Below, piece after piece: positions 19,954 through 34,416 of a DNA stretch of 64,000 nucleotides; the first letter of the stretch is position 1; each line of letters opens with the position of its first letter. The translations under genes and the position numbers were made by a program. The notes under the pieces are model-generated. The model had not been told where the DNA came from and ran no database searches. It saw only the letters and a list, made by a program, of their open reading frames with translations. The stretch covers positions 248,001 to 312,000 of the IMG/VR virus record IMGVR_UViG_3300011113_000640; one strand, given 5' to 3'.

Positions 19954-21091
19954 CCTGTGTGTAAGTGCCAATTTTATACAAGTGACTTAGATGCCCACGT
20001 AACCCTTCATACACGGTTCCGCTGTTGAACCATTGTTTGCCACAGATTCTTTCTAGTTCGTGTAAACTATTTACCCATTTGGTTTTGGCTTCAAATTCGC
20101 CTTCGATGAACCAGCGGCTTAACTCGTTCCATACAGCTCGCGTGGGCTTTTTGATTTGCCAGGTATCATGTTTCCAGTCTGGATAAATGCTGAAATTCAC
20201 TTCGCGATAATAGTCTTCGTCGTGAAAATTGGCAATGTTGTTGGTGTGCTTGATAAGATGTATCCGATTGGTTGACTTCAGCCAGTTTACCACCACGTGA
20301 CTTTGTTTGACCGCCAACTCGGGCAGATTTGGCGACCAATAAAAGTATTCATCGTTTTCCCAATACTCGCCAAGAATATCATTGGTAGGCAAGGTTCCGG
20401 TGGTCATGATCACATCTAAAAAAGCAAAATAAATGTTTGTATCATCTCTCAACAGTCGGGGTTTGTCTACCCCATAAACAAACCCAACCTTTTTGCCCCG
20501 GTGTAATAATTCATTGTGCTCGCGAAATATCTTGTGAAATCGCGATCGTACCATACAGGTAGGATCAAATCTAACTCCAGCGGTCCAGAACCAATCAGGA
20601 TTGTTGGCTGCTTCTAGTATGTTCTTGGTCCAGTCATATACATTGACCTTGATGTTGTGATCGGCCACCAACCTGCGAAGTTGCGGCAAGGCCTGCTGGA
20701 TTTCTCGGGTGTAGTAGCCTGGTGTAGTATCAGATCCCAAACGTGCATATTCTTGTTCTTCAGCTTCGAATGCTCCAAACATATAAACTTCGTCCAGCTT
20801 GATGTTGTTTTTGATAAAAGTTCGAAGGATATACCAGGAATCAACTCCTCCGGAATAAAACAGCACCAAATGATCATAGGCTTCTCGCAGTTGCAAGGCA
20901 CGTTGACGATACAGCTCTTCCAGAGCTACCGGAGGATCTAGGTCCCAGCGGGCAGTACCAAAGATACTGTCATGATAATCCCATTCTATATGTTGCCCAG
21001 AAGAGTTGGCTTCCAGTATGGCTTCTAGTTTGTTGAAAAAGGGCCGACCATTGCAGGTATAAACCCCTTTGTTGTGATACAAATATGTCAT
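19943..21091 (-). CDS. PP-loop (N-type ATP pyrophosphatase superfamily) protein of unknown function
   Basis: LFYSGGVDS PP-loop; YGVDKP. Confidence 0.7.
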   Translation of the reverse strand: MTYLYHNKGVYTCNGRPFFNKLEAILEANSSGQHIEWDYHDSIFGTARWDLDPPVALEELYRQRALQLREAYDHLVLFYSGGVDSWYILRTFIKNNIKLDEVYMFGAFEAEEQEYARLGSDTTPGYYTREIQQALPQLRRLVADHNIKVNVYDWTKNILEAANNPDWFWTAGVRFDPTCMVRSRFHKIFREHNELLHRGKKVGFVYGVDKPRLLRDDTNIYFAFLDVIMTTGTLPTNDILGEYWENDEYFYWSPNLPELAVKQSHVVVNWLKSTNRIHLIKHTNNIANFHDEDYYREVNFSIYPDWKHDTWQIKKPTRAVWNELSRWFIEGEFEAKTKWVNSLHELERICGKQWFNSGTVYEGLRGHLSHLYKIGTYTQVDQ

Positions 21092-22002
21092 TGGGCGATG
21101 TTGTTTCTATGTCTGTAAAGTAATTGTTCTAACAATCTCACATGTTTGTTATAATACATGGTCACAGGAACATTGTCAAATTGACTGGGTCGCATGTCAC
21201 TGAGACTTTGTATGGTAGCAAGGCCAATTTGACTGGTGGCCTGTGTCAGGATTCGTGCAATCTCATCCTGACGCTGAGATCGCATGGTACGATTGGCAAT
21301 CACAATATTGAACACTGTGGGTGCAGTTATGCCTTGTTCCGCCAGAGTTTTCACTGCCGGCAAGTCTGGATGACGCTTGGGGCAACTCATGGCCAACATT
21401 TGTAGCCGTGGATTTCTGGCTTTCATTTGTTGATAGTTGGCCACTCGTTCCAATACCATGTTCACAGAACCATCACCGGTCATCAGCAACAAGGCATCCA
21501 TGTTGCTTTTGAAAGGCACATACCGCACTGTGAAACCATAGCGTGATGCTAATTGTAAAGCGGTCAAGTGTGCGGCATTGCCTATGCCCACACCGCCCAC
21601 GACCAATTCACGCCGACCTTGTAGGCTGGCCACACCCTGACGTTCATCGCCGACATTGGTTATAACCCCCCAGCAGGCATCGCCCATGCTCCATACAGGA
21701 TCATAGTCCGTGAGATTCAAGCGTCCGGCCACGGTTTGTTCTACAAATTTGGGTGCCACGATGGCTACACGGTTCTGTGGTTGTTCGTCCATGTACCGCA
21801 CGGCCAAGATTTGTTCGCCGCCGGGCCGGAATTCCAATATAAAATTGTATTGTGATTGGTTGCGATTGGCCTGTTCTATAATTCGAAACATAGCCGGCGA
21901 TCCTGAGTGGCTGGCACTGTAAGGACTTACTATGGTTATAGTTTCTGCACTCAATACAAAATTTGACCAAAAGGTCAACATTATTAATGCTAATTTTATC
22001 AT
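21088..22002 (-). CDS. Bug/TctC-family periplasmic substrate-binding protein
   Basis: Signal peptide; ITIVSPY, RPGG, GVGIGNAAHL, YVPFK, RHPDLPAVKTLAEQG. Confidence 0.85.
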   Translation of the reverse strand: MIKLALIMLTFWSNFVLSAETITIVSPYSASHSGSPAMFRIIEQANRNQSQYNFILEFRPGGEQILAVRYMDEQPQNRVAIVAPKFVEQTVAGRLNLTDYDPVWSMGDACWGVITNVGDERQGVASLQGRRELVVGGVGIGNAAHLTALQLASRYGFTVRYVPFKSNMDALLLMTGDGSVNMVLERVANYQQMKARNPRLQMLAMSCPKRHPDLPAVKTLAEQGITAPTVFNIVIANRTMRSQRQDEIARILTQATSQIGLATIQSLSDMRPSQFDNVPVTMYYNKHVRLLEQLLYRHRNNIAQ

Positions 22003-22029
22003 TGTTTCTCCTAAATTTTTAATTTTTAA

Positions 22030-22155
22030 GAGCTTGCAGAAGAACTCTGCTACGGCTCGGCGTTATGTATTATGATACAATAAAGACATCACTATGTCAA
22101 GCGTCGATTTGAATGCCGACGTCGGAGTGATCCGGCGTTGCAGGATTTATTTATA
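22030..22155 (-). promoter_or_regulatory. Palindrome-rich regulatory region with TATAAATA late element (22148-22155) and TTGACA-N17-TATCAT (22072-22100)
   Basis: Motifs and five short inverted repeats read directly. Confidence 0.6.
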
Positions 22156-22158
22156 TGT

Positions 22159-22323
22159 TCAACGGCCTCGGCCGGCACTTCTTGTTGGAGGTTTTTTGCC
22201 TATCACAGGTGCCCGTTGTTTGACGGTTTTCCTTTCCACCTGTGGAGCATCATCATTTTCAGGATGATGGATTCCTTTTTTCTTGTCTGCGGCCTTCTTT
22301 AAGAAATCGCTCATTTTGCTCAT
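22159..22323 (-). CDS. Small basic protein (MSKMSDFLKKAADKKKG...)
   Basis: AAGGA SD; track's longer start lies within a tRNA. Confidence 0.7.
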   Translation of the reverse strand: MSKMSDFLKKAADKKKGIHHPENDDAPQVERKTVKQRAPVIGKKPPTRSAGRGR

Positions 22324-22340
22324 AGTTGTTTCCTTGTTAA

Positions 22341-22424
22341 TGGTGCCCCCGGGGTGAATCGAACACCCTTTGAGTTTCCTCGACGGATTACAAATCCGTT
22401 GCAATCCCACTATGCGACAGGGGC
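22341..22424 (-). tRNA. tRNA-Thr(UGU) with long class II-type variable arm
   Basis: Acceptor GCCCCTG/CGGGGGC-ACCA; anticodon arm ACGGA-TTTGTAA-TCCGT; variable region CGAGGAAACTCAAA; T arm GGGTG-TTCGATT-CACCC. Confidence 0.88.
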
Positions 22425-22437
22425 TTGGTTGTGATCA

Positions 22438-22908
22438 TTAAATGATTTTTCCTGTCGCAGCATCAACTGTCACAGGTGTGTGTTGCGCAAATGTAAATGT
22501 GTATGCAGGATTTTTCTGACTGGCCGTCTGTTTCAATGTGCAGTCAGACCAAACTTCTGTTATGCCGCTTTTGGTCAAAATCTCCACGGCCTGACTGCAA
22601 TTTATCGCAGGCGGATAAGTCCAGGGCTGACAATCCTTTACACGACTGTCATCTGGAAAGGGACCTGTGGCATGACCCGTGTTGCTGATCACAATGGCTG
22701 TAGGCCGATTGTCACGGGCACCCAGCCAGCAAGTGTAACAGTCACCACCATTGACACTGTTGGCCAACAGGAATTTACTTCCGTGTTGTACCAAATCAAT
22801 AACACTTTTGGCGCCCCAGACCTGCTGATCAAAACTCAACGTCGACATCAGTCCAACTTGTCTGACATAACTCAAAATGCGATTCAGTATGTTGTTAAAG
22901 ATTTTCAT
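22438..22908 (-). CDS. Hypothetical protein with PepSY-like C-terminus
   Basis: Ends VTVDAATGKII; start may be 22848. Confidence 0.6.
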   Translation of the reverse strand: MKIFNNILNRILSYVRQVGLMSTLSFDQQVWGAKSVIDLVQHGSKFLLANSVNGGDCYTCWLGARDNRPTAIVISNTGHATGPFPDDSRVKDCQPWTYPPAINCSQAVEILTKSGITEVWSDCTLKQTASQKNPAYTFTFAQHTPVTVDAATGKII

Positions 22909-23126
22909 GATTGCTCCGGGGATATTTGATCAGCCATGTCAATTGCAGGCTCTTTGTAGCCAGCTCTGCGTTTCAACAAGTCGATCCTGCGTTGAATTTT
23001 GGCCTGTTTCTTATTGGCCTGTGTTTTTTCTTTTAATTCGGTGAGTTGCTTTACACTGAGACTGACGATCCGGACCTCACCGTTTTTGGTGTAGCCAGGT
23101 TTTTTGCGATTGAGAGTTTTTGCCAT
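22905..23126 (-). CDS. Small basic hypothetical protein
   Basis: AGGA SD; ATGA overlap downstream. Confidence 0.75.
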   Translation of the reverse strand: MAKTLNRKKPGYTKNGEVRIVSLSVKQLTELKEKTQANKKQAKIQRRIDLLKRRAGYKEPAIDMADQISPEQS

Positions 23127-23181
23127 GATTGTGATCCTGTTTGATAATTTTACTTAGTGTTATCACGGCAAGTTTTTAAAA

Positions 23182-24033
23182 TTATTGACATTCCTGCCAG
23201 GTCCAAAATCCGTTGTAAAATTCCGGCAAACGCCGGGCTGTTGGATCCCACGAAAACAGGAATTTTTTTCCAGCCCGAGGAACTAGTAATTTTTGTGGCG
23301 GAGGCCAATCGGTGGTATAGCTTATGCCTAGACATGGCAATCCTTGATAACTGGTATGATCTTTGACAACCACCGTGGCAGATTTGTATTCTGTGAGATC
23401 CAAAACGAACTCAATTTTTTGATCACAGGTGCCGGGTCCAATCTTGACTATGCCGTCAAATGTTTGACTGGGTTTTATCAAGTTTGTGTTGTTCACAGCA
23501 TCGTAAAAACCTCGGGGCAAGGAATCATAGTTCAGCATGACTCTTGGTTGGCAGTCTGATAAATTGTTATCGAGCTGACCTTCGTAGACCGCAACATCTA
23601 TGGCCCAGACATCAGGCACACTGACGTAAGGTGTTTTGAATATCTGGTTGGCATGACTCCAGATTTTTTTCATGGTTGAGTTGGTTATAAACTGACATCC
23701 TAAGGGTTCGCACAGAAAAATGTCAATATTTTGGGGAACATCGTCGGGAGTCAGTGAGAGAAAATCAGCAGTGCTCACTGAGTGCCTGCCATGGTATCCT
23801 GCGTGATCCAGGATGTCACGGGTCAACGCAGTTCTGGCCGATCTAACGTCAACTCCGTAGTAGTGGCTGGCACCAAATTCAAGACAGTATGCACCCAGCA
23901 AACCAACGCCGGTGCCTACTTCGAATACAGTTCGATCTTTGACAAGATTTTTAAGGATTTCTCGATACCAATTAGATCTAGGTGTATCATTGATGTAGGT
24001 CAAGGCCACATTTACTTCAGGATGTCTTATCAT
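23182..24033 (-). CDS. Class I SAM methyltransferase, PRMT-like
   Basis: INDTPRSNWY, VFEVGTGVGLL, DIFLCEPLG resemble PRMT motifs. Confidence 0.75.
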   Translation of the reverse strand: MIRHPEVNVALTYINDTPRSNWYREILKNLVKDRTVFEVGTGVGLLGAYCLEFGASHYYGVDVRSARTALTRDILDHAGYHGRHSVSTADFLSLTPDDVPQNIDIFLCEPLGCQFITNSTMKKIWSHANQIFKTPYVSVPDVWAIDVAVYEGQLDNNLSDCQPRVMLNYDSLPRGFYDAVNNTNLIKPSQTFDGIVKIGPGTCDQKIEFVLDLTEYKSATVVVKDHTSYQGLPCLGISYTTDWPPPQKLLVPRAGKKFLFSWDPTARRLPEFYNGFWTWQECQ

Positions 24034-24619
24034 GATCTAGGTTGACCCATGTGGTTATTTCTCCTATGCAAGTATTGGATTTAGAATTTATACAAAGTTC
24101 TAGCTGGCTGATAATATCTTGGACATTGACGCCATGGCCAGTCCAAGTAGGTCTGGAACGACCTATGGGAGTATCCAGTCTATCTACTGTTATCAAACTG
24201 GTACGAAAATTTACCTGGCCAATTCGAAAGGCCTGAGTCCATTGTAGACTTGCATGTTTGAGAGCCGCCTTGTTGGAATTGTAGCTTTCCCAACCCGGAA
24301 AAGGTGCAGATGTATCTTCACTGCCCACCCCACCTATGTTTATGATATGTCCACCCTTGCCACGTTCTTGCCACAGCATAGCCACTTCGGTCAGCAGCTG
24401 AGTTTGACCATATAGTGTTTGGCTTTGACCAAACACTCCATCATAGGCGTTGTTGACGAATACATCATAATTCAAACTGAGTTCGGCTATCTTAGCACGC
24501 TGGGTCAAAATATCATGACCGGTTGATCTACTGACACTGGTGGCATCAAACTTTTTAACCAATTCTAAACCCAGACCTTGGTTGCCACCTGTGACTAGAA
24601 AAGTTTTGAGATTGGCCAT
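24017..24619 (-). CDS. Short-chain dehydrogenase/reductase
   Basis: TGGNQGLG, VNNA, YNSNK. Confidence 0.85.
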   Translation of the reverse strand: MANLKTFLVTGGNQGLGLELVKKFDATSVSRSTGHDILTQRAKIAELSLNYDVFVNNAYDGVFGQSQTLYGQTQLLTEVAMLWQERGKGGHIINIGGVGSEDTSAPFPGWESYNSNKAALKHASLQWTQAFRIGQVNFRTSLITVDRLDTPIGRSRPTWTGHGVNVQDIISQLELCINSKSNTCIGEITTWVNLDHDKTS

Positions 24620-24625
24620 TTAATT

Positions 24626-24701
24626 TGGTACACCCAAGGGGATTCGAACCCCTGTTGCAGCCGTGAAAGGGCCGAGTCCTGGGCCTCTAGACGATGGGTG
24701 C
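24626..24701 (-). tRNA. tRNA-Glu(UUC)
   Basis: GCACCCA/TGGGTGT-ACCA; loop CTTTCAC; GTTCGAATC. Confidence 0.95.
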
Positions 24702-24704
24702 ATG

Positions 24705-24863
24705 TTACTTCATTCTCAACTGCTGAGCAAATTTTTTGACAATCAGATTTGCCTTCTTGTTGGATTCTGTGATGCTTCTGCTGGCAGCCGATCGTTTTTC
24801 GGTCTTGGTCCACTGTCCAGCGATAGTTCTGCTTAGTTCACCTGCACTTTGACGCTTTGCCAT
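24705..24863 (-). CDS. 52-aa basic protein (MAKRQSAGELSRTIAGQW...), not in ORF track
   Basis: Hand-translated; fills gap between rpoZ-like gene and tRNA-Glu. Confidence 0.6.
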   Translation of the reverse strand: MAKRQSAGELSRTIAGQWTKTEKRSAASRSITESNKKANLIVKKFAQQLRMK

Positions 24864-24865
24864 GT

Positions 24866-25087
24866 TTATTTTACCTTTATCAAATAATCAGTCATATTAA
24901 AAGTGCCACTCTGTACTTCTTTGAGTGCATCAATGGGCGTGACCCAAGAGTTGGTTTCTCGAGCCCGGCGCTTCATTTCTCTCAGTCGTTGCGCAGCAGC
25001 GATCACAAGATCATATCGGCCGCCGGCATAGGCCACACAGCGTTCGGTATCAATTTCACTGCTACGACTTTCGATTCTGGTGCTCAT
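24866..25087 (-). CDS. rpoZ: RNA polymerase omega subunit-like protein
   Basis: RYDLVIAAAQRLRE and PIDALKEV match omega conserved regions; AAGGAG SD. Confidence 0.8.
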   Translation of the reverse strand: MSTRIESRSSEIDTERCVAYAGGRYDLVIAAAQRLREMKRRARETNSWVTPIDALKEVQSGTFNMTDYLIKVK

Positions 25088-25109
25088 GACTTCTCCTTGT
25101 AAAAAGTTA

Positions 25110-25152
25110 ATTATACACTAAAATATGGCGCTGGTCAAACACTTTATAAATA
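25110..25152. promoter_or_regulatory. Divergent promoters: minus TTGACC-N17-TATAAT (25110-25138) and plus TATAAATA (25145-25152)
   Basis: Consensus matches. Confidence 0.8.
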
Positions 25153-25156
25153 TCCA

Positions 25157-25873
25157 ATGTGCCCGCAACACCTTAGTTCACATTTTGCCAATCAAGAACT
25201 TAATTGGATTCAGACTGACTCATATGAACAATATCAAAAAAATCTCATTGAAAAACAAGATGAACTAGAACAGTTTGGTTGGATCGATCAAACTTTTACC
25301 TATCGATATAACAGTCAAGGATTCAGAAGTGCCGAGTTTGAAGAATCTGTTCCCAGTGCGATGTTTCTTGGATGTAGCCACACGCTGGGAGTAGGATTAC
25401 CTATGGAAGCTACCTTTTCGCACATAGTCAGCACCAGTTTAAATCTTAAAAATTTCAATCTGGGTGTTCCGGGTAGTAGCAATGATACTGCATTCCGTTT
25501 GGCGCATTATTACATTCCTCGATTGAAACCAACCATTGTGGTTTTTCTATCAACTGAACGAACCAGATTTGAATTGTTTACAGAAAACAACGAAAACGAT
25601 ATTTTATCCTATAACAACATGACCAATTCTCTTCAATTTGTCAGAGAAGAGTTGAAGCTATTTTATCGTCATTGGATAATGAATAACAACAACGTTGATA
25701 TGCATTATGCAAAAAATGTTGGAGCCATTCAACAGCTATGTTCTGCAAACAATATCAAATTTTATCACAGAGAATTTTTAAAGTTTCCGTTGATAGACAA
25801 AGCAAGAGATCTAGCGCACTATGGAATTAAATCTAACAATATTGTCGCCAAGAAAATTCTAGCAGATCTTTAA
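25157..25873 (+). CDS. SGNH hydrolase-like protein
   Basis: NSQGFRS, FLGCSHT, NLGVPGSS, DLAHYG. Confidence 0.75.
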   Translation: MCPQHLSSHFANQELNWIQTDSYEQYQKNLIEKQDELEQFGWIDQTFTYRYNSQGFRSAEFEESVPSAMFLGCSHTLGVGLPMEATFSHIVSTSLNLKNFNLGVPGSSNDTAFRLAHYYIPRLKPTIVVFLSTERTRFELFTENNENDILSYNNMTNSLQFVREELKLFYRHWIMNNNNVDMHYAKNVGAIQQLCSANNIKFYHREFLKFPLIDKARDLAHYGIKSNNIVAKKILADL

Positions 25874-26808
25874 CCTATTAGCTTGGCCAGGTGTGATCTA
25901 TTGTAGCGAGCAATAGTTTGTAAATTGTCAATGATGTCAATGGTAGACATTGTTTCTTTCATGGCTTGCCATCTAGCCGGCCCTTCGAGTCGATCGTAGC
26001 TTTCATCCCAACAACTACTATAAGTTTGGAATCCAATATCTTGTAACCTTTTTAAATAATTTCGCGGACCATAAACCAACACAGGCTTGCCAGCCATGAT
26101 AGGCCTTACAGTTTTTTCAGTGGGAAAGAATGTATCACCCAGTGTATATGTTTCGGCAACAATTTCAATTTGGAATTGATTGTAGTAACCTAGTATGCCG
26201 CTGTTGGTCTTTGGCTCTCTGACAAATTGATCTCTAACCCTGTGTCCGTCAATGCTGGTAACTGGACAACAAGTAAGCCACCCAATAATGTCGGTGTTGA
26301 GCCAATCATCGGGTTTTTCTAAATTAATTGGAGCAGTTTCTTTGATCCAAGGCGGCGCCTCGTCTGTGTTCATAACACTTAACAATGTGTTTCCTTGTTG
26401 CCAAAGATCATAGAGTATTCTTGCTCGAGCAAAAGTTCTGCGACCCATAAAGTAGCCAAACAAGCAAGCACCATCGGCAACAGGTGCAACATCGGTCCAG
26501 TACTTGCGGCTCATTTCAAAAAAATGACTAAGGGAGACTTTACCTATGTTTAAATTTGCGTACGGTGTTTGCTCGTGCATGTTAGGATTTCTAGCAATAC
26601 TGATTGTTTTGGGGTCTCTGCCGGTGGCAACACAGTGTTGATTTAACATGTCCACAATGCCCAGTGCTTGCATGCTAGGACCTTCATAACGGAAATCTAT
26701 TTCGACATGGGCAGAAGGATCAATATTGCTGAGACAATTTTTAACCTCCGCTGGGTTGCTCCAAGAATCTCCACACACTCTTAAAGGAATAACAATCGGT
26801 TTATTCAA
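25870..26808 (-). CDS. Putative glycosyltransferase-like 'ET..TEKT.RP' family protein
   Basis: VAETY..FFPTEKTVRP..GFQTY..WDESYD. Confidence 0.6.
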   Translation of the reverse strand: MNKPIVIPLRVCGDSWSNPAEVKNCLSNIDPSAHVEIDFRYEGPSMQALGIVDMLNQHCVATGRDPKTISIARNPNMHEQTPYANLNIGKVSLSHFFEMSRKYWTDVAPVADGACLFGYFMGRRTFARARILYDLWQQGNTLLSVMNTDEAPPWIKETAPINLEKPDDWLNTDIIGWLTCCPVTSIDGHRVRDQFVREPKTNSGILGYYNQFQIEIVAETYTLGDTFFPTEKTVRPIMAGKPVLVYGPRNYLKRLQDIGFQTYSSCWDESYDRLEGPARWQAMKETMSTIDIIDNLQTIARYNRSHLAKLIG

Positions 26809-26855
26809 ACTACTCTTTGCTTTCTTTTTTCAATATTTAATAATTATAGTTAATC

Positions 26856-26932
26856 TGGTGCCCCGGGAAGGATTCGAACCTTCAACAGCTCCCTTCTGAG
26901 GAGAGTGCGTCTACCTGTTGCGCCACCGGGGT
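26856..26932 (-). tRNA. tRNA-Leu(CAG) with short variable loop and A1:C72 mismatch
   Basis: ACCCCGG/CCGGGGC-ACCA; CTCTC-CTCAGAA-GGGAG; variable loop CTGTT. Confidence 0.88.
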
Positions 26933-26938
26933 TGACCT

Positions 26939-27529
26939 TTACGTTACTTGCGTGGTACCGTTGCCGTTTTTAAAACCAATCTCGCCACCTTCTGCTTCAA
27001 TCCTTTTGATCACATCTTCAAACAGGATAGGAGCAAAGTCGGTTTGTTCCACGCACACGCAATGATAACGAACATCAACTATGTCGGTGATCTTGCCATT
27101 GAATCCTGGCAACATCACCCGGTTGGCATGCAAGTGCCCGTGGATGTTGACACCAAAGCGACCAAGGCTTTCTGAGTGAATAGGAATATGGCTGAGTATC
27201 ATGCCATTCATCACATGGTATCCACGCAGGCTACGGAAGTAAGGAGTGTAATCCTCATCCTTAAAGATATCGTGATTACCACGGATAAGAATCTTGTCAC
27301 CATTGAGTCTATTCATAATAGGTAAACTCTTGCGGTTGATCACTACATCACCCAAGTGATATACTTTATCGTTTGGACGCACACGCTCGTTCCAGGCCCG
27401 GACCATGAACTCGTCCATTTCGTTGGGATCTGTCCAAGGGCGAAGTTTTGTAACTCCATCGTTACGTGTGAAGCGACATACACCTGCGTGACCAAAGTGC
27501 GTATCGCTGACTAAAAATACTGCTGGCAT
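26939..27529 (-). CDS. Calcineurin-like metallophosphoesterase
   Basis: SDTHFGH, HLGD, GNHD, HGHLH. Confidence 0.92.
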   Translation of the reverse strand: MPAVFLVSDTHFGHAGVCRFTRNDGVTKLRPWTDPNEMDEFMVRAWNERVRPNDKVYHLGDVVINRKSLPIMNRLNGDKILIRGNHDIFKDEDYTPYFRSLRGYHVMNGMILSHIPIHSESLGRFGVNIHGHLHANRVMLPGFNGKITDIVDVRYHCVCVEQTDFAPILFEDVIKRIEAEGGEIGFKNGNGTTQVT

Positions 27530-27554
27530 AAGTGCCTCCTTTCTTTGTAAAACA

Positions 27555-27628
27555 TGGCGCCGGTCTAAGGAATCGAACCTCAATTAACGGTTTTGGAGAC
27601 CGCTGTAATGCCATTATACCAGACCGAC
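27555..27628 (-). tRNA. tRNA-Trp(CCA)
   Basis: GTCGGTC/GACCGGC-GCCA; GCGGT-CTCCAAA-ACCGT. Confidence 0.93.
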
Positions 27629-27634
27629 CAAACT

Positions 27635-27712
27635 TGGAAGTGAGGGTGAGATTCGAACTCACGGCTTTAGGGATTTGCAGTCCCTTGCATTGGGCCACTC
27701 TGCCACCTCACT
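27635..27712 (-). tRNA. tRNA-Cys(GCA)
   Basis: AGTGAGG/CCTCACT-TCCA (U73); AGGGA-CTGCAAA-TCCCT. Confidence 0.95.
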
Positions 27713-27795
27713 GTAATAAGCTCATAACAAAAATGTATTGGATCCCTGGCAAAATCGCATATCGAATGCGATATATATTACTAGGAGTTATACAC

Positions 27796-27957
27796 ATGGA
27801 ATACATTTTAACCTTATTTGTTTACTTCAACGGAGATCTCATCCGTAAACTGGAACAACCAGTGGCCACTGCGGCCGTATGTCAACAACTCAGTGCAGGT
27901 CTCAACTTCCGTGATCCTGCTGTGACAGCCTTTGCCACTTGTCGTCCCAGATCATAA
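27796..27957 (+). CDS. 53-aa protein antisense within tRNA cluster
   Basis: AGGAG SD before ATG 27796; fills the gap between tRNA-Cys and tRNA-Met. Confidence 0.6.
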   Translation: MEYILTLFVYFNGDLIRKLEQPVATAAVCQQLSAGLNFRDPAVTAFATCRPRS

Positions 27958-27958
27958 T

Positions 27959-28032
27959 TGGTTGCGGGTGACGGAGTTGAACCGCCAACTGGAGCTTATG
28001 AGACTCCCGAGATACCATTTCTCTAACCCGCG
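27959..28032 (-). tRNA. tRNA-Met(CAU), initiator-like
   Basis: CGCGGGT/ACCCGCA-ACCA with C1:A72 mismatch; loop CTCATAA. Confidence 0.9.
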
Positions 28033-28038
28033 TCTGTT

Positions 28039-28212
28039 TCACTGTTCCTGTTCCATTCTACGGAACTGTTCCTGCGCCCGAATCATAGCAGACGCACGAT
28101 CGATCTTGTTCTGAAACAGTTGTTGCTTTTGTGCTTCGGTCAAGAATGCCGAACTCACATCATAAGCCTGTTTCACAATAGCGTCGTTGAGTTTTTTGTA
28201 ATCAATTGACAT
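28039..28212 (-). CDS. 57-aa hypothetical protein (MSIDYKKLNDAIVKQ...)
   Basis: AAGGA SD; start downstream of terminator. Confidence 0.65.
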   Translation of the reverse strand: MSIDYKKLNDAIVKQAYDVSSAFLTEAQKQQLFQNKIDRASAMIRAQEQFRRMEQEQ

Positions 28213-28234
28213 CTTTTTCCTTTCCTCTATAAAA

Positions 28235-28269
28235 TAAAAAACCCCGGAGTGTTTAGTTCCAGGGCTTTT
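28235..28269 (-). terminator. Intrinsic terminator of putative attenuator
   Basis: AAAAGCCCTGGA-ACTAAACAC-TCCGGGGTTTTTT. Confidence 0.85.
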
Positions 28270-28291
28270 GAATATCGTATGATGTTTCGTA

Positions 28292-28393
28292 CTATTCCGT
28301 GCCCTGAATCTCATCCTCGCAAATCTGCCATAGACCAACCACCTCATTGAAGTTGGGTTGTGGTACAAGATAGGTCACTTTGCGATTCAACAT
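28292..28393 (-). CDS. Putative 33-aa leader peptide MLNRKVTYLVPQPNFNEVVGLWQICEDEIQGTE
   Basis: ATG 6 nt after -10 box; carries TTCAGGGC complementary to the terminator 5' arm. Confidence 0.65.
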   Translation of the reverse strand: MLNRKVTYLVPQPNFNEVVGLWQICEDEIQGTE

Positions 28394-28399
28394 AGTAGT

Positions 28400-28428
28400 A
28401 TTATATAGAGTTATTTATATCTTGTCAA
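28400..28428 (-). promoter_or_regulatory. Composite promoter: TTGACA-N17-TATAAT with nested TATAAATA (28412-28419)
   Basis: Exact consensus matches. Confidence 0.9.
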
Positions 28429-28443
28429 CCGGGTTTGGTCAAC

Positions 28444-28474
28444 AAAAAAGCCCCCGGGGGAGCTTTTTTTTTTT
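28444..28474. terminator. Probable bidirectional terminator after porin gene
   Basis: AAAAAAGCCCCCGGGGGAGCTTTTTTTTTT. Confidence 0.6.
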
Positions 28475-28490
28475 GGATCACTTTTAAAAA

Positions 28491-29231
28491 TTAATTAAAA
28501 GTTTTTGTCAAGCCAACTACCACGGCATTCTTGTAGAGCTTTTGACCGCTCACAGTGTTTGCAGTTTCAAAAGTTCTTGTTGTGCCAGAGTTGGTGAAAT
28601 ACTTTACACTGACGTCAAAGTCTTTGGGTAGACTGTAAACAAAACCAGCATTGATGTCATTGTAATCGTAGGCTGTGCTGTTGGCCACATTGGTACGACC
28701 ATAGTGTGCTACAACAGCCAGATTCTTGATCACAGGAACTGGTAACTTGCCATCTGCTTGCACGTAGGTTGTGCCTTGAGCATTGGCTGTACCGAAATAG
28801 CCATCTCCCAAGGTTCTGCTATACTTGGCAGAAATGATGTCTTTGTAACCTAGGCCGACATAGCCTTCATAGGTGTCAAAGTTTGAACCAGTTTTTGCTG
28901 AAGTGGTGGCACGTGGATAGAAATAGTTGTAGCTACCGATGTCGATCGAGATGCCCTTGAAGATTTCTTTCTTGTAACCAGCGTAGAGATCACTCTCTAC
29001 ACCTGCACCATTGGTGTAGACTTGGCTAGAAACACTGCTGTTCCAGTTACCAATGTACAAGCCACTCTTGTGTGCATAGTCGATGCCGCCCTGAACTGCA
29101 GGAGCATTTTGGGTTTGGCTAACACCGCGGAAACGGTAGTCGCTGGTCAAACCTAAATTGCCGGTGAGTTGAGCTTGAGCCGAGGCAACAAAGCCAGCGG
29201 ACAAGGCCAATGCTAATAATAATTTTTTCAT
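28491..29231 (-). CDS. TorF-family putative porin (TIGR02001-like)
   Basis: Signal peptide; SDYRFRGVSQT, PAVQGGIDY, GNWNSSV, DLYAGY; ends KTFN. Confidence 0.9.
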   Translation of the reverse strand: MKKLLLALALSAGFVASAQAQLTGNLGLTSDYRFRGVSQTQNAPAVQGGIDYAHKSGLYIGNWNSSVSSQVYTNGAGVESDLYAGYKKEIFKGISIDIGSYNYFYPRATTSAKTGSNFDTYEGYVGLGYKDIISAKYSRTLGDGYFGTANAQGTTYVQADGKLPVPVIKNLAVVAHYGRTNVANSTAYDYNDINAGFVYSLPKDFDVSVKYFTNSGTTRTFETANTVSGQKLYKNAVVVGLTKTFN

Positions 29232-29307
29232 GCTTGAAGTTTCCTTTTAAAAGAATGCTGGGTGATCACCCAACTCTTTATTTAGTGGTTTTTACTTAGT
29301 GACCAAC

Positions 29308-29335
29308 AAAAAAGCCTGATTTCTCAGGCTTTTTA
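29308..29335. terminator. Bidirectional intrinsic terminator
   Basis: AAAAAAGCCTGA-TTTC-TCAGGCTTTTT. Confidence 0.85.
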
Positions 29336-29355
29336 TTTTGAAACAACAAAAACTA

Positions 29356-29910
29356 TTAGAAATTCCGAGTATAATTAAAATTTATAATTTTTTGATCTAC
29401 ATCACCTTGCACACGATCATATCTTACACCAATTGTATCTTTTTTGGTAACAGCATAACCTACTCCGGCTCTCCAGGTGCGAGTAGTATCGTTCATGGCA
29501 GTGTTAAATGGAGTGCGAAAACGCCAGCCAGCACGAACAGTAAAGCCTGATGAGCCAAATGGAGCGGTAACCCCGGGTTCTACGCTATAGTATCCATAAC
29601 TGCCAGTGCTGATATATCGTTCGCCAACACCTGTGCGAGTGTACAAGGTCGCAAACTTTGTCGGCAACAATCCAGTTACTCCGGCTTCAAGGCGAGTGCT
29701 GGCCAATGCATTGCTACCATTTTGGTTGATTTGTAAAACTCCTACATCACCAAGAAAGTTTTTGTTGATGTTTTCTCTGACTGCCAAGCTCCAACTGTTT
29801 TGATCTGCTGATTTGACATTGTCGACATTGCCATATTCGACCGTGGCGGATCCTGCGTGGACCAAACCTGCGGCAAACACCAAACTTAGAATAGTTAATA
29901 GTTTTTTCAT
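29356..29910 (-). CDS. Small outer-membrane beta-barrel protein
   Basis: Signal peptide; alternating beta pattern; C-terminal FNYTRNF beta-signal. Confidence 0.8.
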   Translation of the reverse strand: MKKLLTILSLVFAAGLVHAGSATVEYGNVDNVKSADQNSWSLAVRENINKNFLGDVGVLQINQNGSNALASTRLEAGVTGLLPTKFATLYTRTGVGERYISTGSYGYYSVEPGVTAPFGSSGFTVRAGWRFRTPFNTAMNDTTRTWRAGVGYAVTKKDTIGVRYDRVQGDVDQKIINFNYTRNF

Positions 29911-29977
29911 AATTGTCCTTAAAGGTAATTTAATGATATCGTATCTAGATTTAGTTATGACTCAAGATTAACGGATC

Positions 29978-30003
29978 AAAAAAAACCCGCCGAAGCGGGT
30001 TTT
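29978..30003 (-). terminator. Intrinsic terminator after tmRNA
   Basis: AAAACCCGC-TTCG-GCGGGTTTTTTTT. Confidence 0.92.
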
Positions 30004-30009
30004 GACATT

Positions 30010-30280
30010 TTTGGTAACAAGGCATGTCTGCCCCGGAGATCATGCCGCTAAGGCAAAGACCTCGTCGTTAGCTGCGTTTGCAGTTATCATTTTGCTTCTA
30101 CGACCAGGCTTTCCCAGTCCTAACGGGTTTCGCATTCCCGTGTTGCCGTCCGCATTGGCTCACCATGTCGATCCTGATTCATCCCCACCCAAGCATACTG
30201 GACAATACACTTGGGTGGAGATGCTGGGATTTGCACCCAGGTCCATAGTGCCTTCACTTGGAAGGGATTACAACAATTCG
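30010..30280 (-). ncRNA. ssrA: Circularly permuted two-piece tmRNA; tag ANAANDEVFALAA* at 30040-30081
   Basis: T arm and 3' acceptor CATCTCCACC precede 5' acceptor GGGGATG (G3:U70); intervening hairpin 30187-30216; ATAACT-GCA resume context; outer ends approximate. Confidence 0.92.
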
Positions 30281-30287
30281 AAAAACG

Positions 30288-30545
30288 TTAACTCAACTTA
30301 CGTGCCATTTGAGGCGCTGGCGTAAACGAATTCACTATAGCCAAATAACCGTCGGCTGACGCTTCAGTGCTGAATAATCTTATAAAATTGTCTGAGTAAG
30401 TGATTCCGTCTGAATTTGTAGTCGTCTGAGTATTAACTGACATGGTAACCGCTGCCACGGCTGGATCAGTGAGATATGCACTTAATTGATTCGTTTCTGC
30501 TTCAGTGCGAGCACGTCCGTAAATAACTTCTGTAAAATATAGCAT
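30288..30545 (-). CDS. Hypothetical protein
   Basis: AAGGA SD; TATAAATA at 30570-30577. Confidence 0.7.
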   Translation of the reverse strand: MLYFTEVIYGRARTEAETNQLSAYLTDPAVAAVTMSVNTQTTTNSDGITYSDNFIRLFSTEASADGYLAIVNSFTPAPQMARKLS

Positions 30546-30573
30546 GGCAATTCCTTATATTAATGTTGTTATT

Positions 30574-30603
30574 TATACGAACTCAAGATATACGAACTCA
30601 AGA
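30574..30603. repeat. Perfect 2 x 15-bp tandem repeat TATACGAACTCAAGA
   Basis: Read directly. Confidence 0.95.
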
Positions 30604-30629
30604 CTTATGTTTGGATTAACAATCAAATC

Positions 30630-30722
30630 CTACTTGCCAAACAAATGAGCCACAATGCCCATGCCCACAAATACTGTCATGGCCGCAACGGCCGCCCAGG
30701 GGATGTTTTTTAATATGTTCAT
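30630..30722 (-). CDS. 30-aa hydrophobic peptide MNILKNIPWAAVAAMTVFVGMGIVAHLFGK
   Basis: Hand-translated; ATGA overlap with upstream peptide. Confidence 0.55.
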   Translation of the reverse strand: MNILKNIPWAAVAAMTVFVGMGIVAHLFGK

Positions 30723-30802
30723 TGCTCGTCCTGATGTTCGTTGATCCACATGATACCATAACAAACTACCACAGCCAACAAGGCAAAAAATATCAACCAC
30801 AT
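30719..30802 (-). CDS. 27-aa hydrophobic peptide MWLIFFALLAVVVCYGIMWINEHQDEQ
   Basis: Hand-translated; 2 nt after previous stop. Confidence 0.55.
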   Translation of the reverse strand: MWLIFFALLAVVVCYGIMWINEHQDEQ

Positions 30803-30804
30803 GA

Positions 30805-30996
30805 TTAATTATAGCCTTTTATGTGATTGTTGTCAATCGGGGGATTTCCTCGGGCCATGACATTTTCTAACTGCCGGGCACGATCACGTTCGGGCGGCAA
30901 CGGACCACAACCCAGTCTTGCCCACTCGTCTTCGGAGTAGTAATAGCGTTCCACGGGCGGTTTCTTTTGCTGTTCCACGGTCATCGTATTTACCAT
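30805..30996 (-). CDS. Small hypothetical protein
   Basis: Follows tRNA-Ile2. Confidence 0.65.
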   Translation of the reverse strand: MVNTMTVEQQKKPPVERYYYSEDEWARLGCGPLPPERDRARQLENVMARGNPPIDNNHIKGYN

Positions 30997-31000
30997 GTTT

Positions 31001-31075
31001 TGGTAGGCCTTGAAAGAATTGAACTTTCACTCCATCGATTATGAGTCGATTGCTTTACCATTAAGCTAAAGGCCC
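31001..31075 (-). tRNA. tRNA with CAU anticodon, Ile2 (lysidine)-type body
   Basis: GGGCCTT/AAGGCCT-ACCA; ATCGA-CTCATAA-TCGAT resembles bacterial tRNA-Ile2. Confidence 0.85.
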
Positions 31076-31084
31076 AATAATTGT

Positions 31085-31113
31085 ATTGTAGCATCATGGC
31101 CCATAGTTGTCAA
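31085..31113 (-). promoter_or_regulatory. Sigma70-type promoter for tRNA-Ile2 unit
   Basis: TTGACA-N17-TACAAT with TG extension. Confidence 0.8.
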
Positions 31114-32050
31114 GCCTGTCACGCAAACCAAGGTAATTTTTGAAATAAAGAAGATCCTTTTGTTGAGCGGTAATGGGCAAAGATTCTACTGTGTTTACAT
31201 CATGCAAGCTGTTGGCACCGCCCATGTCTCGGTCATGTGGCCAGTCTGTGGCAAACAACATGCGATTCCATCCCAATAGTTCGGCATTTTCAATAAAACC
31301 CGGCATTTCTGGTTCGGTGGTAAACCAAAAATTTCTGCGGAGATATAGCATGGGATCTGCAAATCCCAACTCCAGCATGCGGTCCTGCAGTTCATAGATC
31401 CAGTTGGTATCACGTTCGGCAATTACAATTTTGAGATCGGGGTAGCGATCCAGGGTTCCACCAATGATAAGGCTGGCTATGGTTCTTTTCCAAAAATGAT
31501 GTGCTGGCCAGATTTCTTTAAGTAGTTGTAGTTCTTTGGCCCAGATGCTGGTGTCAGATTCAATAACGTCATTGATTTCGGTATGGTGCAGATACACCGG
31601 CATTTTTGTCTTGGCTATTTTCGCAAACAACACATCGTATTCTGGCATGAATCCCCAGGCTGGTGTTTCGCTCAAAAACACAGCCAAAAAATTCTGTTCA
31701 GCACGCAGTTCTAATTCTGCCAGGCTAGCCGTTAGATCCTGCAGGGCCAACCAAATAGTGGCACTGAAACCAGAGTTGTGGCTGACAATTTGATGCAGGT
31801 GTTCATTGTAGATCTGCATGACTTTGCGACCCACGTGTTTGGGTAATCTATAGTTGATGTTCAAACTGATGCCCATGAAGTTCAGCAACTGGTGATCAAT
31901 TTTGAGTGCAGAGAATTCTTTCAGGCGATCATCGATATTGGTATAGCTGTGTCGTTTTTTTTCACAATACTGCTGATACCATTCCTGTATGTCAGGATGA
32001 TCAAACACCGCAGGTGGAGGAGTATAGTGTGCATCAGCGTCAATGATCAT
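31094..32050 (-). CDS. Amidohydrolase_2 family (ACMSD/LigW-like) metal-dependent enzyme
   Basis: IIDADAH, PVYLH, LDRYPDLKIVIAE, LFATDWPH. Confidence 0.88.
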   Translation of the reverse strand: MIIDADAHYTPPPAVFDHPDIQEWYQQYCEKKRHSYTNIDDRLKEFSALKIDHQLLNFMGISLNINYRLPKHVGRKVMQIYNEHLHQIVSHNSGFSATIWLALQDLTASLAELELRAEQNFLAVFLSETPAWGFMPEYDVLFAKIAKTKMPVYLHHTEINDVIESDTSIWAKELQLLKEIWPAHHFWKRTIASLIIGGTLDRYPDLKIVIAERDTNWIYELQDRMLELGFADPMLYLRRNFWFTTEPEMPGFIENAELLGWNRMLFATDWPHDRDMGGANSLHDVNTVESLPITAQQKDLLYFKNYLGLRDRLDNYGP

Positions 32051-32067
32051 ATGATATTTATTGTTGT

Positions 32068-32439
32068 TCAAGGCCCGTAGTTGTCAAGAAATTGTTCCAA
32101 ATTACCGTAGAGATTGACCATGACCGCTTCTCGGCTTCCAAAAAACACTATCTTTTTGGGTATGCCTTTGGTTGCCGAAATATAGTAAGGCATCTGCATT
32201 TTTCTATCCAATTTGAGCATGAGACGCTTGTTGAACGTCAAGGGATCTGTGATGGCATACTCGTAGTGCTCAAGATCCAACCGCCGAGACAATACATCAT
32301 ATCCAATGCCGGTCAAGCGCATGCCACCGGTACGTCTGATGTTGAACCACCAACTTGGCAAAGCTGTGTCCACAGGCACACGATCACTTTCGGGCAAGAG
32401 CTCGATGAGTTGTTGAGTCAGTAGATGTTTGTCACGCAC
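32068..32439 (-). CDS. Hypothetical protein
   Basis: GTG start just after upstream stop; WWFN.R..GGMRLT. Confidence 0.7.
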   Translation of the reverse strand: MRDKHLLTQQLIELLPESDRVPVDTALPSWWFNIRRTGGMRLTGIGYDVLSRRLDLEHYEYAITDPLTFNKRLMLKLDRKMQMPYYISATKGIPKKIVFFGSREAVMVNLYGNLEQFLDNYGP

Positions 32440-32440
32440 A

Positions 32441-32728
32441 TCAAGGATATACCTGATCACCGGCTCGTAGCAACACCACGGTGAATCGGTCGGTCTTGAA
32501 CTGTGTGTTGAGTTTCTTGGCCAAGTTGCGGGCATGTCCAGGATTGCTGAAACTAACCTTTTTGTATTTGGGCCCAGGATACTGCACCAGGAGATTTGAT
32601 GTTTTGAGATTGATGGGTTGATTGTCAAAGAACACAGCCCAGATACCTTCACTGGCCAGGACCTGTTCGGTCTTGTAAGTGGTCTTGTTGGTGTGTTCGA
32701 TCAACACCGTGGGTTTTGGGCGACTCAT
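32441..32728 (-). CDS. Hypothetical protein (MSRPKPTVLIE...)
   Basis: AGGA SD; TAAATA upstream. Confidence 0.8.
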   Translation of the reverse strand: MSRPKPTVLIEHTNKTTYKTEQVLASEGIWAVFFDNQPINLKTSNLLVQYPGPKYKKVSFSNPGHARNLAKKLNTQFKTDRFTVVLLRAGDQVYP

Positions 32729-32773
32729 GTCATTATATTCCTATATTTTATTTATCTAAAAATATGGGTATAT

Positions 32774-32980
32774 TTAGAATGTGCCGCCTCCTATTTTGAC
32801 CTCTACAACAGGCTCTTGACCAATTTTGTTAATTCGATCATGTAAAACATGTAGCTCAGCCAACAGTCTGGTGATATCTGCATGCAGGGCACGGGCATCC
32901 GTCATGCTCATCACAAAGTCTCGATTGCCACGAGCATCATGCCCTTCTACTCGGTCAATGAACTTATTGAGATGAAGCAT
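32774..32980 (-). CDS. Small hypothetical protein
   Basis: Operon position. Confidence 0.7.
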   Translation of the reverse strand: MLHLNKFIDRVEGHDARGNRDFVMSMTDARALHADITRLLAELHVLHDRINKIGQEPVVEVKIGGGTF

Positions 32981-33422
32981 CGCCGGCTTGTTGTTCGGTG
33001 TAGAATGGCCCTTGATAGGGATATCGTTGTAGCACTATGAGTTTGGGAGCCAACACAGTGCGCCAATGACGTCCGCGGCGCACATTGTACCAACCTGCGG
33101 CAAACCACGATTTGCTCTTGGTTGTTTTGGTGTACACCGGCAACTGTTGCGGAACGTCCCACATGGGATTATGCACACGGCCTGCCACGGGATAACCATG
33201 CACATGGTCTAGCACTGCCCGAGGTCGAGTTTTTTTGATTGCAGGTTCAAACTGTATGTTCACCCGCTGTGCTGCCAGGCGTATGGTCTTGAACTGTGCT
33301 ATCTGATTGTTGATCTTGACCTGATAACCGCCGGCACAGGCTTCCACATTGCCAACCTTTTGATCTCCGTCTTGCAAGATCCAAAACTTTTTGTCTATCA
33401 CGGGTTTAGCTATTAGTTTCAT
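32964..33422 (-). CDS. Hypothetical protein
   Basis: AGGAG SD before ATG 33422. Confidence 0.8.
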   Translation of the reverse strand: MKLIAKPVIDKKFWILQDGDQKVGNVEACAGGYQVKINNQIAQFKTIRLAAQRVNIQFEPAIKKTRPRAVLDHVHGYPVAGRVHNPMWDVPQQLPVYTKTTKSKSWFAAGWYNVRRGRHWRTVLAPKLIVLQRYPYQGPFYTEQQAGDASSQ

Positions 33423-34416
33423 TGAGCACTCCTTTGTATGTTTCATTCATCCAACGCCCAAAGCTGTCGGCGCTTTCACTGCATTTGTTTAATTCGTATT
33501 TGCCACAGAACTGCATGAATCTCACGCCCACTTGCCCCACATCCTTGTGACTGACCTGTTCACGTATGGCTGCATCCACTGTGGCCTTGACGTCTGCAGG
33601 TTGTGCTGTCAAATCAATCAAGGTCCTGTTGCGTTCATAGTCATCCAACACACGATGTTCTACACCGTCGGGATCTGACCAGCGTTGCAACATCATGTTG
33701 TTCCAGTTGTAGCCTTTTTTGTCTTTGTCCGCAAACGCTTCCTGGAGTCCAACCTTGTTCTTAGTGCCCTTAGTTCTGACACCGGGATACGCTGAGAAGA
33801 CGTTATCCGAACTATCTCCTCGCATACACTTTTCAAAGAGTAGCCATTCTGGGTTCGGCGTTGACTTAGGTTCTTTAGTTTTCTTATCGATAACCGCTTT
33901 GCCTTTGGCATCAAAGATTCCTTCCGTGGTGATTAGTTCGTCGGTGATTCCATTGTATTGTTTGACGTTGGCGGCTACCAGTTGGACAAAGTCAGTGTCA
34001 CTGCTGATAACAACATGCTCATCTTGGGGATGTAGTGCGATCCAGCGAGCTATGACGTCGTCGCCTTCGGCTGTAGCACAACGAATCACGCTACAGTTGG
34101 TTTTCTCACTCAAGTATTTAGTCAGATTATCATAGGTTTCCCAGAACATCTTGTCTTCTTCGACTTCCGCTTCTGTGAGTGCGGCACGGGCCACAGCACG
34201 GTTGTTTTTGTAGGGTTTGTACATGTCCTTGCGCCAGCTACGGCCCTCCAGGGCAAACACCATATGATCGGCTTCAAAACGCCGGGCCATTTTGTTGGCG
34301 GCCATTAGGGTAACATGCAGGGCGAAACCTACTTTTTCCCAGGTATCGCTGGCACGGAAAGCACCGTGTCGGGCACGGAAGAAAAGATTGGCAGTATCTA
34401 CGAGAACATATTTCAT
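33406..34416 (-). CDS. rnh: T4-like RNase H / 5'-3' flap exonuclease
   Basis: LVDTAN, SWRKD..YK.NR, EGDD, SSDTDF.QL, GDSSDNV. Confidence 0.92.
   Translation of the reverse strand: MKYVLVDTANLFFRARHGAFRASDTWEKVGFALHVTLMAANKMARRFEADHMVFALEGRSWRKDMYKPYKNNRAVARAALTEAEVEEDKMFWETYDNLTKYLSEKTNCSVIRCATAEGDDVIARWIALHPQDEHVVISSDTDFVQLVAANVKQYNGITDELITTEGIFDAKGKAVIDKKTKEPKSTPNPEWLLFEKCMRGDSSDNVFSAYPGVRTKGTKNKVGLQEAFADKDKKGYNWNNMMLQRWSDPDGVEHRVLDDYERNRTLIDLTAQPADVKATVDAAIREQVSHKDVGQVGVRFMQFCGKYELNKCSESADSFGRWMNETYKGVLNETNS

Follow-up and report, generated by a model that had tools for sequence, protein, structure and literature searches.

In the classical amino-acid operon attenuators of Proteobacteria (E. 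coli trpL, hisL, pheL, thrL, leuL and ilvL), a short translated leader ORF is followed by an intrinsic terminator placed before the structural genes, and an antiterminator competes for the 5' arm of the terminator. The stop codon is placed such that a terminating ribosome covers the antiterminator strand, while a stalled ribosome favours readthrough. In leaderless leader ORFs, such as trpL/rnTrpL of Sinorhizobium meliloti (PMC6614838) and the polycysteine sORFs of mycobacteria (bioRxiv 10.1101/834739), the sensory ORF begins at the 5' end of the transcript and ribosome pausing on it sets downstream expression. These elements sense one amino acid through tandem codons and regulate metabolic genes, the mycobacterial ones acting on translation by unmasking a ribosome-binding site. 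In antibiotic-responsive attenuators (bmrCD, PMC4191407; mef/mel-msrD, PMC4335068), a ribosome stall in a leader ORF without codon runs switches a terminator to an antiterminator. Here the signal is a ribosome-bound drug together with a specific nascent peptide, and the targets are resistance genes. T-box riboswitches also read tRNA status through a terminator/antiterminator switch and control genes of the translation apparatus, but they bind uncharged tRNA directly and are not translated.

A locus at the head of the tRNA genes of a large freshwater phage was analysed in a window of 64,000 nucleotides (positions 248,001 to 312,000 of IMG/VR record IMGVR_UViG_3300011113_000640; the window is identical to part of an IMG/VR viral contig of 320 kb). 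Like the amino-acid operon attenuators, it has a short ORF that appears to be translated, an intrinsic terminator, and a candidate antiterminator overlapping the end of the ORF. In contrast to them, it has no run of regulatory codons and no conserved 1:2 pause or anti-antiterminator hairpin, its mRNA is leaderless or nearly so, it is carried by a phage, and the genes that follow are tRNA genes and not biosynthetic enzymes. Leaders of this family contain codons for many amino acids, up to all 20, once each. No T-box features and no match to the T-box or to known leader families of Rfam were found (28232-28430, E <= 1); in 20000-34000 the Rfam search detected only tRNAs and tmRNA.

Organization of the locus

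A preliminary description had proposed that this region is a translation-sensing attenuator which switches on the phage tRNA operon. Its description of the sequence was confirmed at every coordinate (Table 1). The promoter is a 12/12 match to the consensus. The full promoter pattern with ATAAATA occurs once in the window and in none of 100 shuffled sequences. The nested TATAAATA, considered as a T4-type late promoter, occurs 5 times in the window against 1.8 expected (4 of 100 shuffles reach 5 or more); it is absent from distant family members and this reading was left open. The ATG lies 6 nt after the -10 box, and the 33 sense codons use 17 different amino acids. The single Trp and Cys codons lie 19 and 10 nt before TTCAGGGC, which pairs with GCCCTGGA of the terminator 5' arm over 8 bp, one of them U-G. 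In the window alone, this octamer is the best partner of the terminator 5' arm anywhere in the leader (z = -2.6; 3 of 200 shuffles as good). The terminator folds as a 12-bp hairpin of about -16 kcal/mol; a consensus scan missed it only because loops of 3-8 nt were allowed.

Table 1. Features of the leader region and the genes that follow it (positions in the window).
Feature	Position	Strand	Remarks
Upstream terminator	28441..28470	-	Hairpin plus T run that ends the Gcw_chp (porin-like) gene; isolates the leader promoter from upstream transcription
Leader promoter	28400..28428	-	-35 TTGACA 28428-28423; 17-nt spacer with TATAAATA 28419-28412 and conserved ATAAATA 28418-28412; -10 TATAAT 28405-28400
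Leader ORF	28292..28393	-	33 codons plus TAG; ATG at 28393; Trp codon 28330-28328; Cys codon 28321-28319; TAG 28294-28292
Region 2, candidate antiterminator 5' strand	28301..28308	-	TTCAGGGC; inside codons 29-31 of the leader ORF
Middle hairpin	28270..28297	-	GAAUA...UAUUC; contains the stop codon; stacks on the 2:3 helix
Intrinsic terminator	28236..28269	-	5' arm (region 3) 28269-28258, with GCCCTGGA at 28265-28258; 9-nt loop ACUAAACAC; 3' arm (region 4) 28248-28237; T run 28241-28236
57-aa ORF	28039..28212	-	Strong Shine-Dalgarno sequence directly after the T run; function unknown
tRNA-Met (CAU)	27959..28032	-	First tRNA of the proposed controlled unit
tRNA-Cys (GCA)	27635..27712	-	
tRNA-Trp (CCA)	27555..27628	-	
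Metallophosphoesterase gene	26939..27529	-	Embedded in the tRNA array; anchor used to find relatives
tRNA-Leu (CAG)	26856..26932	-	Last tRNA before the first weak (9/12) promoter-like sites, at 26630 and below

A separate promoter for the tRNAs was not found in the window, as no sigma-70-like site of 9/12 or better lies on the minus strand between 28400 and 26630. A plus-strand promoter-like site at 28206-28235 arises from the ATGTCAATTGA start of the 57-aa ORF and is not conserved. The controlled unit probably runs from 28393 towards the next strong promoter at 25138, with only weak (9/12) sites in between. It contains tRNA-Met, tRNA-Cys, tRNA-Trp and tRNA-Leu, and the leader holds M, C, W and L. 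Searches of Pfam and PHROGs with the leader peptide and the 57-aa ORF gave nothing, and the ESM Atlas search with the 57-aa ORF gave only unnamed viral clusters with scores of 0.56 or less.

The contig encodes a DNA polymerase, many auxiliary metabolic genes and a two-piece betaproteobacterial-type tmRNA. The nearest cellular relatives of the Gcw_chp gene are in Burkholderiales, many in Polynucleobacter, at 32-48% identity, and the host is probably a freshwater betaproteobacterium. A blastn search of GenBank phages with 27500-28700 hit only tRNA genes, and no cultured relative is found among them.

Conservation of the leader ORF and the alternative pairing

To address whether the element is conserved, relatives were collected from IMG/VR phage contigs through neighbouring proteins, through the promoter pattern, and through the terminator alone, using either a covariance model of the 3' part or a terminator pattern scan. 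Together these anchors gave about 85 distinct leaders sharing a promoter, an ATG 5-10 nt after the -10 box, an ORF of 20-53 codons, a small hairpin, an intrinsic terminator and then tRNA genes, although two sublineages instead have a UTR of about 40-50 nt. In the terminator-anchored set, which is the unbiased one, 59 of 60 contexts have an ORF that starts just after a -10 box and ends 29-38 nt before the terminator pattern. In some phages (L052, L009 and L351) the tRNA array starts 14-48 nt after the T run with no protein gene between; the association is therefore with the tRNAs and not with the 57-aa ORF. The expectation of the preliminary description, that related phages carry a short ORF upstream of their tRNA arrays with compensatory changes between its 3' end and the terminator, was fulfilled.

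The leader ORF shows a coding signature. The frame is open in all members, while the other two frames are closed by stops in 38-40 of 40, and pN/pS is 0.45 in frame against 0.89 and 0.92 out of frame. Cys is encoded by both TGC and TGT. Among 20 aligned representatives only Met1 and one Trp are invariant and mean column identity is 21%, which is typical of leader peptides and unlike functional small proteins. A second perfect promoter in the window, at 30836, is also followed by an ATG, 5 nt after its -10 box, and leaderless starts therefore seem normal for this phage, although the efficiency of such initiation in the presumed host is not known. Enrichment of the codons GGG, AGG and TCC is explained by the G-rich region 2; CTA before Trp is frequent, but the sequences are related.

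The terminator is strongly supported by covariation: across 40 relatives 94.9% of cells are paired, 6 pairs show double changes, and 0 of 500 shuffles reach the covariation score. For the antiterminator, an alignment-free search placed the best partner of the terminator 5' arm within the last ~17 nt (up to 29 nt in the two longest leaders) before the stop codon in 36 of 40 members. The sequences change together, for example TTCAGGGC/GCCCTGGA, TTCGAGGT/ACCTCGGA, AGGGGTTCT/AGAACCCT and GAGGGTCC/GGACCCT. In one fixed alignment register 71% of cells are paired, against 25-57% when the register is slid, and one column pair reads CG in 15 members and UA in 13. Cognate region 2/region 3 pairs are better than non-cognate pairs in 13 of 13 clades (p = 1.2e-4). 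Columns 26-30:60-64, corresponding to the middle hairpin, are mostly paired. Transcripts cut before the 3' arm fold region 2, the stop-codon hairpin and region 3 into one long stem-loop in 39 of 40 members. The stop codon lies 1-17 nt after the antiterminator strand and the terminator starts 23-33 nt after the stop, outside the footprint of a terminating ribosome.

At equilibrium, however, the terminator fold is favoured by a median of 5 kcal/mol, even with a modelled ribosome at the Trp codon; the choice must therefore be kinetic, which could not be shown here. Such folding with blocked footprints allows physically implausible pairing across the ribosome and does not inform a kinetic switch. 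RNAalifold on 22 full leaders predicted only the terminator, and the individual 5' hairpins that exist are not conserved. In the absence of a conserved 1:2 hairpin an untranslated leader should read through, which differs from the trp paradigm, and how ribosome and polymerase would be synchronised is unexplained.

Leader peptide content and the tRNA arrays

Every member heads a tRNA array. To address whether the content of the leader follows that of the array, 19 clusters (less than 50% peptide identity) with at least 3 kb of downstream sequence were compared. Only 5 of 232 array amino-acid types are missing from the cognate leader. Random protein segments from the window miss 40.4 +/- 4.9 (minimum 22 in 5000), segments from the same locus miss 44.9 +/- 5.2, and permuted leader/array pairings miss 19.4 +/- 3.5 (p = 5e-5). 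Leaders also use more amino-acid types than random segments (18.0 against 16.3). The result survives leaving out any cluster and reclustering at 30-50% identity (median p = 0.0005, maximum 0.009), although the clusters are not fully independent phylogenetically and the arrays are truncated by locus ends. At the anticodon level the match is only marginal (30 against 38.5 +/- 4.4, p = 0.03).

The pairing-specific signal lies in the part of the ORF upstream of the last nine codons (p = 4e-4) and not in those nine (p = 0.21), that is, where a stall would leave region 2 free. Thirty of the 232 types are nevertheless represented only in the last nine codons, where a stall would cover region 2 and favour termination. 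Many arrays contain further strong promoters, so the attenuator is not the only control. For tRNAs before the first internal strong promoter-like site, 0 of 154 types are missing (permuted 12.6 +/- 3.4), while behind such a site 5 of 88 are missing, no better than permuted pairings. The proximal result holds at thresholds of 10-12 matches out of 12, but the contrast with distal tRNAs depends on the threshold.

The exceptions are telling. A clade of 20-22-aa leaders built of L, N, G, T, A, E and D has neither W nor C, and heads arrays of Gly, Glu, Ala, Leu, Ile, Asp, Asn, Thr, Val and Pro without tRNA-Trp or tRNA-Cys. A clade lacking C and E heads arrays lacking tRNA-Cys and tRNA-Glu, whereas its sister clade has both C in the leader and tRNA-Cys in the array. 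One contig (L162) carries two elements: the first leader contains all seven types of its array (D, E, N, Y, C, H, V), while the second lacks C, E, H and Y, and in relatives it heads arrays without Cys, Asp, Glu and Tyr. Trp and Cys, which the preliminary description had singled out as stall codons, are not the only candidate sensor codons. The distance of Cys to region 2 ranges from 1 to 97 nt, and in some members (1-5 nt) it lies too close to act as a sensor. The distance of Trp to the C-terminus varies from 3 to 24 residues, so a TnaC/SecM-like arrest residue is not supported.

A proposed attenuator of phage tRNA genes

These results, which rest on sequence comparison alone, are best explained by a ribosome-mediated transcription attenuator at the head of the tRNA array, and this reading is held with moderate confidence. 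Transcription would start at or next to the ATG, and region 2, the stop codon and the small hairpin would pair with region 3 as RNAP moves on. A ribosome that translates the leader quickly and reaches the stop codon would melt and cover region 2, leaving region 3 free to pair with region 4, and transcription would end before the tRNA genes. If the ribosome is late, either stalled at a codon whose tRNA is scarce or never initiated, the antiterminator would persist and RNAP would read into the 57-aa ORF, tRNA-Met, tRNA-Cys, tRNA-Trp and beyond. That ribosome position decides the fold, the direction of the switch, and tRNA shortage as the natural signal are inferred. The content match suggests that the relevant cause of delay is shortage of the tRNAs that the array can supply, giving negative feedback on phage tRNA production.

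A translation-dependent but generic attenuator, reporting ribosome or initiation-factor availability, transcription-translation coupling or host shut-off and not the supply of particular tRNAs, appears less likely but remains possible. The lack of codon runs, the leaderless start, which makes initiation itself a likely variable, the weak anticodon-level match, and the expectation that a stall in the last nine codons would not give readthrough are in its favour. In addition, Trp sits at a roughly constant 16-25 residues from the N-terminus in all but one of the 20 representatives, and not at a constant distance from the switch; in this reading the invariant Trp would matter for the nascent chain or for RNA reasons. 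Such a sensor, however, does not predict the pairing-specific match between leader and array, nor the loss of W, C or E from leaders whose arrays lack those tRNAs.

It is improbable that the ORF is an independent small-protein gene whose peptide acts in trans, with downstream genes expressed by leakage or from other promoters. The coding signature, the invariant Trp, the other leaderless micro-ORF unit at 30836 and the precedent of peTrpL (PMC7298713) would be compatible with this. The low residue conservation argues against it, and the covarying complementarity between the last codons and the terminator arm has no role in a plain gene. Moreover, no promoter fits between the T run and the Shine-Dalgarno sequence of the next gene, and the peptide content tracks the array. 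Least likely is a non-coding, ligand-set leader or sRNA (a riboswitch, a protein-binding element or a T-box-like element) in which the ORF is incidental. Its architecture would be similar, the terminator loop ACUAAACAC is oddly conserved, and an invariant UGG could in principle be a T-box specifier for tRNA-Trp. But no Rfam family matches at E <= 1, the 5' two-thirds has no consensus structure, the frame is open in every member with frame-specific purifying selection, the Cys codon varies, and a variant with a 40-nt 5' UTR keeps the ORF.

More tentatively, the leader ORF could be a purpose-built multi-tRNA sampler carrying one codon for each tRNA species that the array can supply, in which severe shortage of any one of them stalls the pioneer ribosome and switches on the whole array. 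Such an OR-gated, self-correcting circuit would be the first attenuator known to control tRNA genes and the first regulatory logic described for phage tRNA arrays. The shortage could arise from host shut-off, tRNA decay or cleavage by host anticodon nucleases, though the anticodon-nuclease trigger suggested in the preliminary description remains speculation.

The mechanism class is known, but the tRNA gene target, the leaderless start and the one-codon-per-tRNA design appear undescribed; no attenuator in front of phage tRNA genes, and no regulatory mechanism for these arrays, was found in full-text literature searches. Such an attenuator would also show that leader peptides without codon runs can be recognised by comparative content analysis, and would offer a compact natural sensor of tRNA availability for synthetic biology and for studying anticodon-nuclease defences. 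Many large phages carry tRNA arrays, and whether these serve codon-usage compensation, replacement of degraded host tRNAs or escape from tRNA-cleaving defences is debated. A conserved attenuator whose leader peptide mirrors the tRNA content of the array would extend leader-peptide attenuation from amino-acid metabolism to the tRNA pool itself, and would mean that the phage measures tRNA supply through translation and answers with its own tRNAs, probably making them only when translation runs short of them.

Conserved elements around the leader

Within the promoter spacer, ATAAATA is conserved across most clades while the flanking spacer bases vary. In the window it reads TATAAATA, the T4 late-promoter consensus. 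The motif is absent from the most distant members of the family, namely the IMG/VR phage contigs L052, L009, L120 and L035. It could be a second phage-specific promoter or a regulator site. The 9-nt terminator loop, ACUAAACAC, is also conserved in sequence across clades whose leaders have diverged almost completely, which is unusual for a terminator loop and unexplained.

In a variant of the element, at L142 and L105, the ATG next to the -10 box opens only a 1-3-codon mini-ORF, and the real leader ORF starts about 40-50 nt further on, after an A-rich stretch. Contig L162, of 12.8 kb, carries two leader/terminator elements with different peptides, each behind an 11/12 promoter and each heading a separate tRNA block.

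Coordinates of features in the window and in related phages. L numbers denote IMG/VR phage contigs.
Sequence	Position	Strand	Feature
Window	24866-25087	-	73-aa ORF
Window	28249-28257	-	Terminator loop
Window	28412-28418	-	ATAAATA in promoter spacer
Window	28491-29231	-	Gcw_chp gene
Window	29980-30305	-	tmRNA
Window	30836-30650	-	Second perfect promoter and micro-ORFs
Window	31113-31001	-	11/12 promoter and separate tRNA-Met (31075-31001)
L162	4438-4269 and about 340-158	-	Two leader/terminator elements
L351	8480-8660	+	Tandem duplication holding a promoter
L142	6022-6300	+	Variant of the element
L105	about 6790-7090	+	Variant of the element

Other promoters and leaderless small ORFs

A second perfect TTGACA-N17-TATAAT promoter in the window is followed by an ATG 5 nt after the -10 box. 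It starts two overlapping hydrophobic micro-ORFs of about 27 and 30 aa, upstream of an 85-aa ORF and the tmRNA. This may be another leaderless regulatory or membrane-peptide unit. The promoter type of the leader, with ATAAATA, is likewise followed by other leaderless small ORFs, which fall into two groups. At L204, L219, L240, L152 and L114, and at L134, L212 and L224, the ORFs begin either with MKLKK or MKVKK (46 aa, lysine-rich) or with MNKVD or MMNKVD (35-36 aa). No downstream terminator of this kind was detectable in either group.

In the window, an 11/12 promoter with an extended TG motif lies directly in front of a separate tRNA-Met, and the tRNA would start about 10 nt after the -10 box. 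Inside the tRNA array of L351, a segment of about 110 nt holding a perfect TTGACA-N17-TATAAT promoter is tandemly duplicated between tRNA-Gly and tRNA-Glu. Thus, arrays can have their own internal promoters. In the window, the 73-aa ORF lies behind the 11/12 promoter at 25138 and is followed by another small ORF and tRNA-Glu. Its match to RNA polymerase omega/Rpb6 is weak (PF01192, 20.1 bits, below the cut-off of 26).

Auxiliary gene, tmRNA and unusual phage tRNAs

The Gcw_chp outer-membrane (porin-like) gene (Pfam E = 7e-47) is an auxiliary gene borne by the phage. Its closest cellular homologues are in Burkholderiales, including Polynucleobacter, at 32-48% identity, which provides a clue to the host. 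The phage also encodes a two-piece (permuted) tmRNA of the betaproteobacterial type (RF01850, 129 bits) with the tag ANAANDEVFALAA. Relatives carry it too, some with unusually long tags of about 29 residues, for example AKASTGEVTVSGKNVKFSARTVKAESFAV.

Notably, several phage tRNAs have A at anticodon position 34, which is rare in bacteria outside tRNA-Arg(ACG). These are tRNA-Leu AAG (L001, L003, L008, L110), tRNA-Ser ACU (L003, L008, L025, L037), tRNA-Phe AAA (L098, L236) and tRNA-Thr AGU (L052). Their presence suggests inosine-type decoding or evasion of anticodon-directed nucleases.
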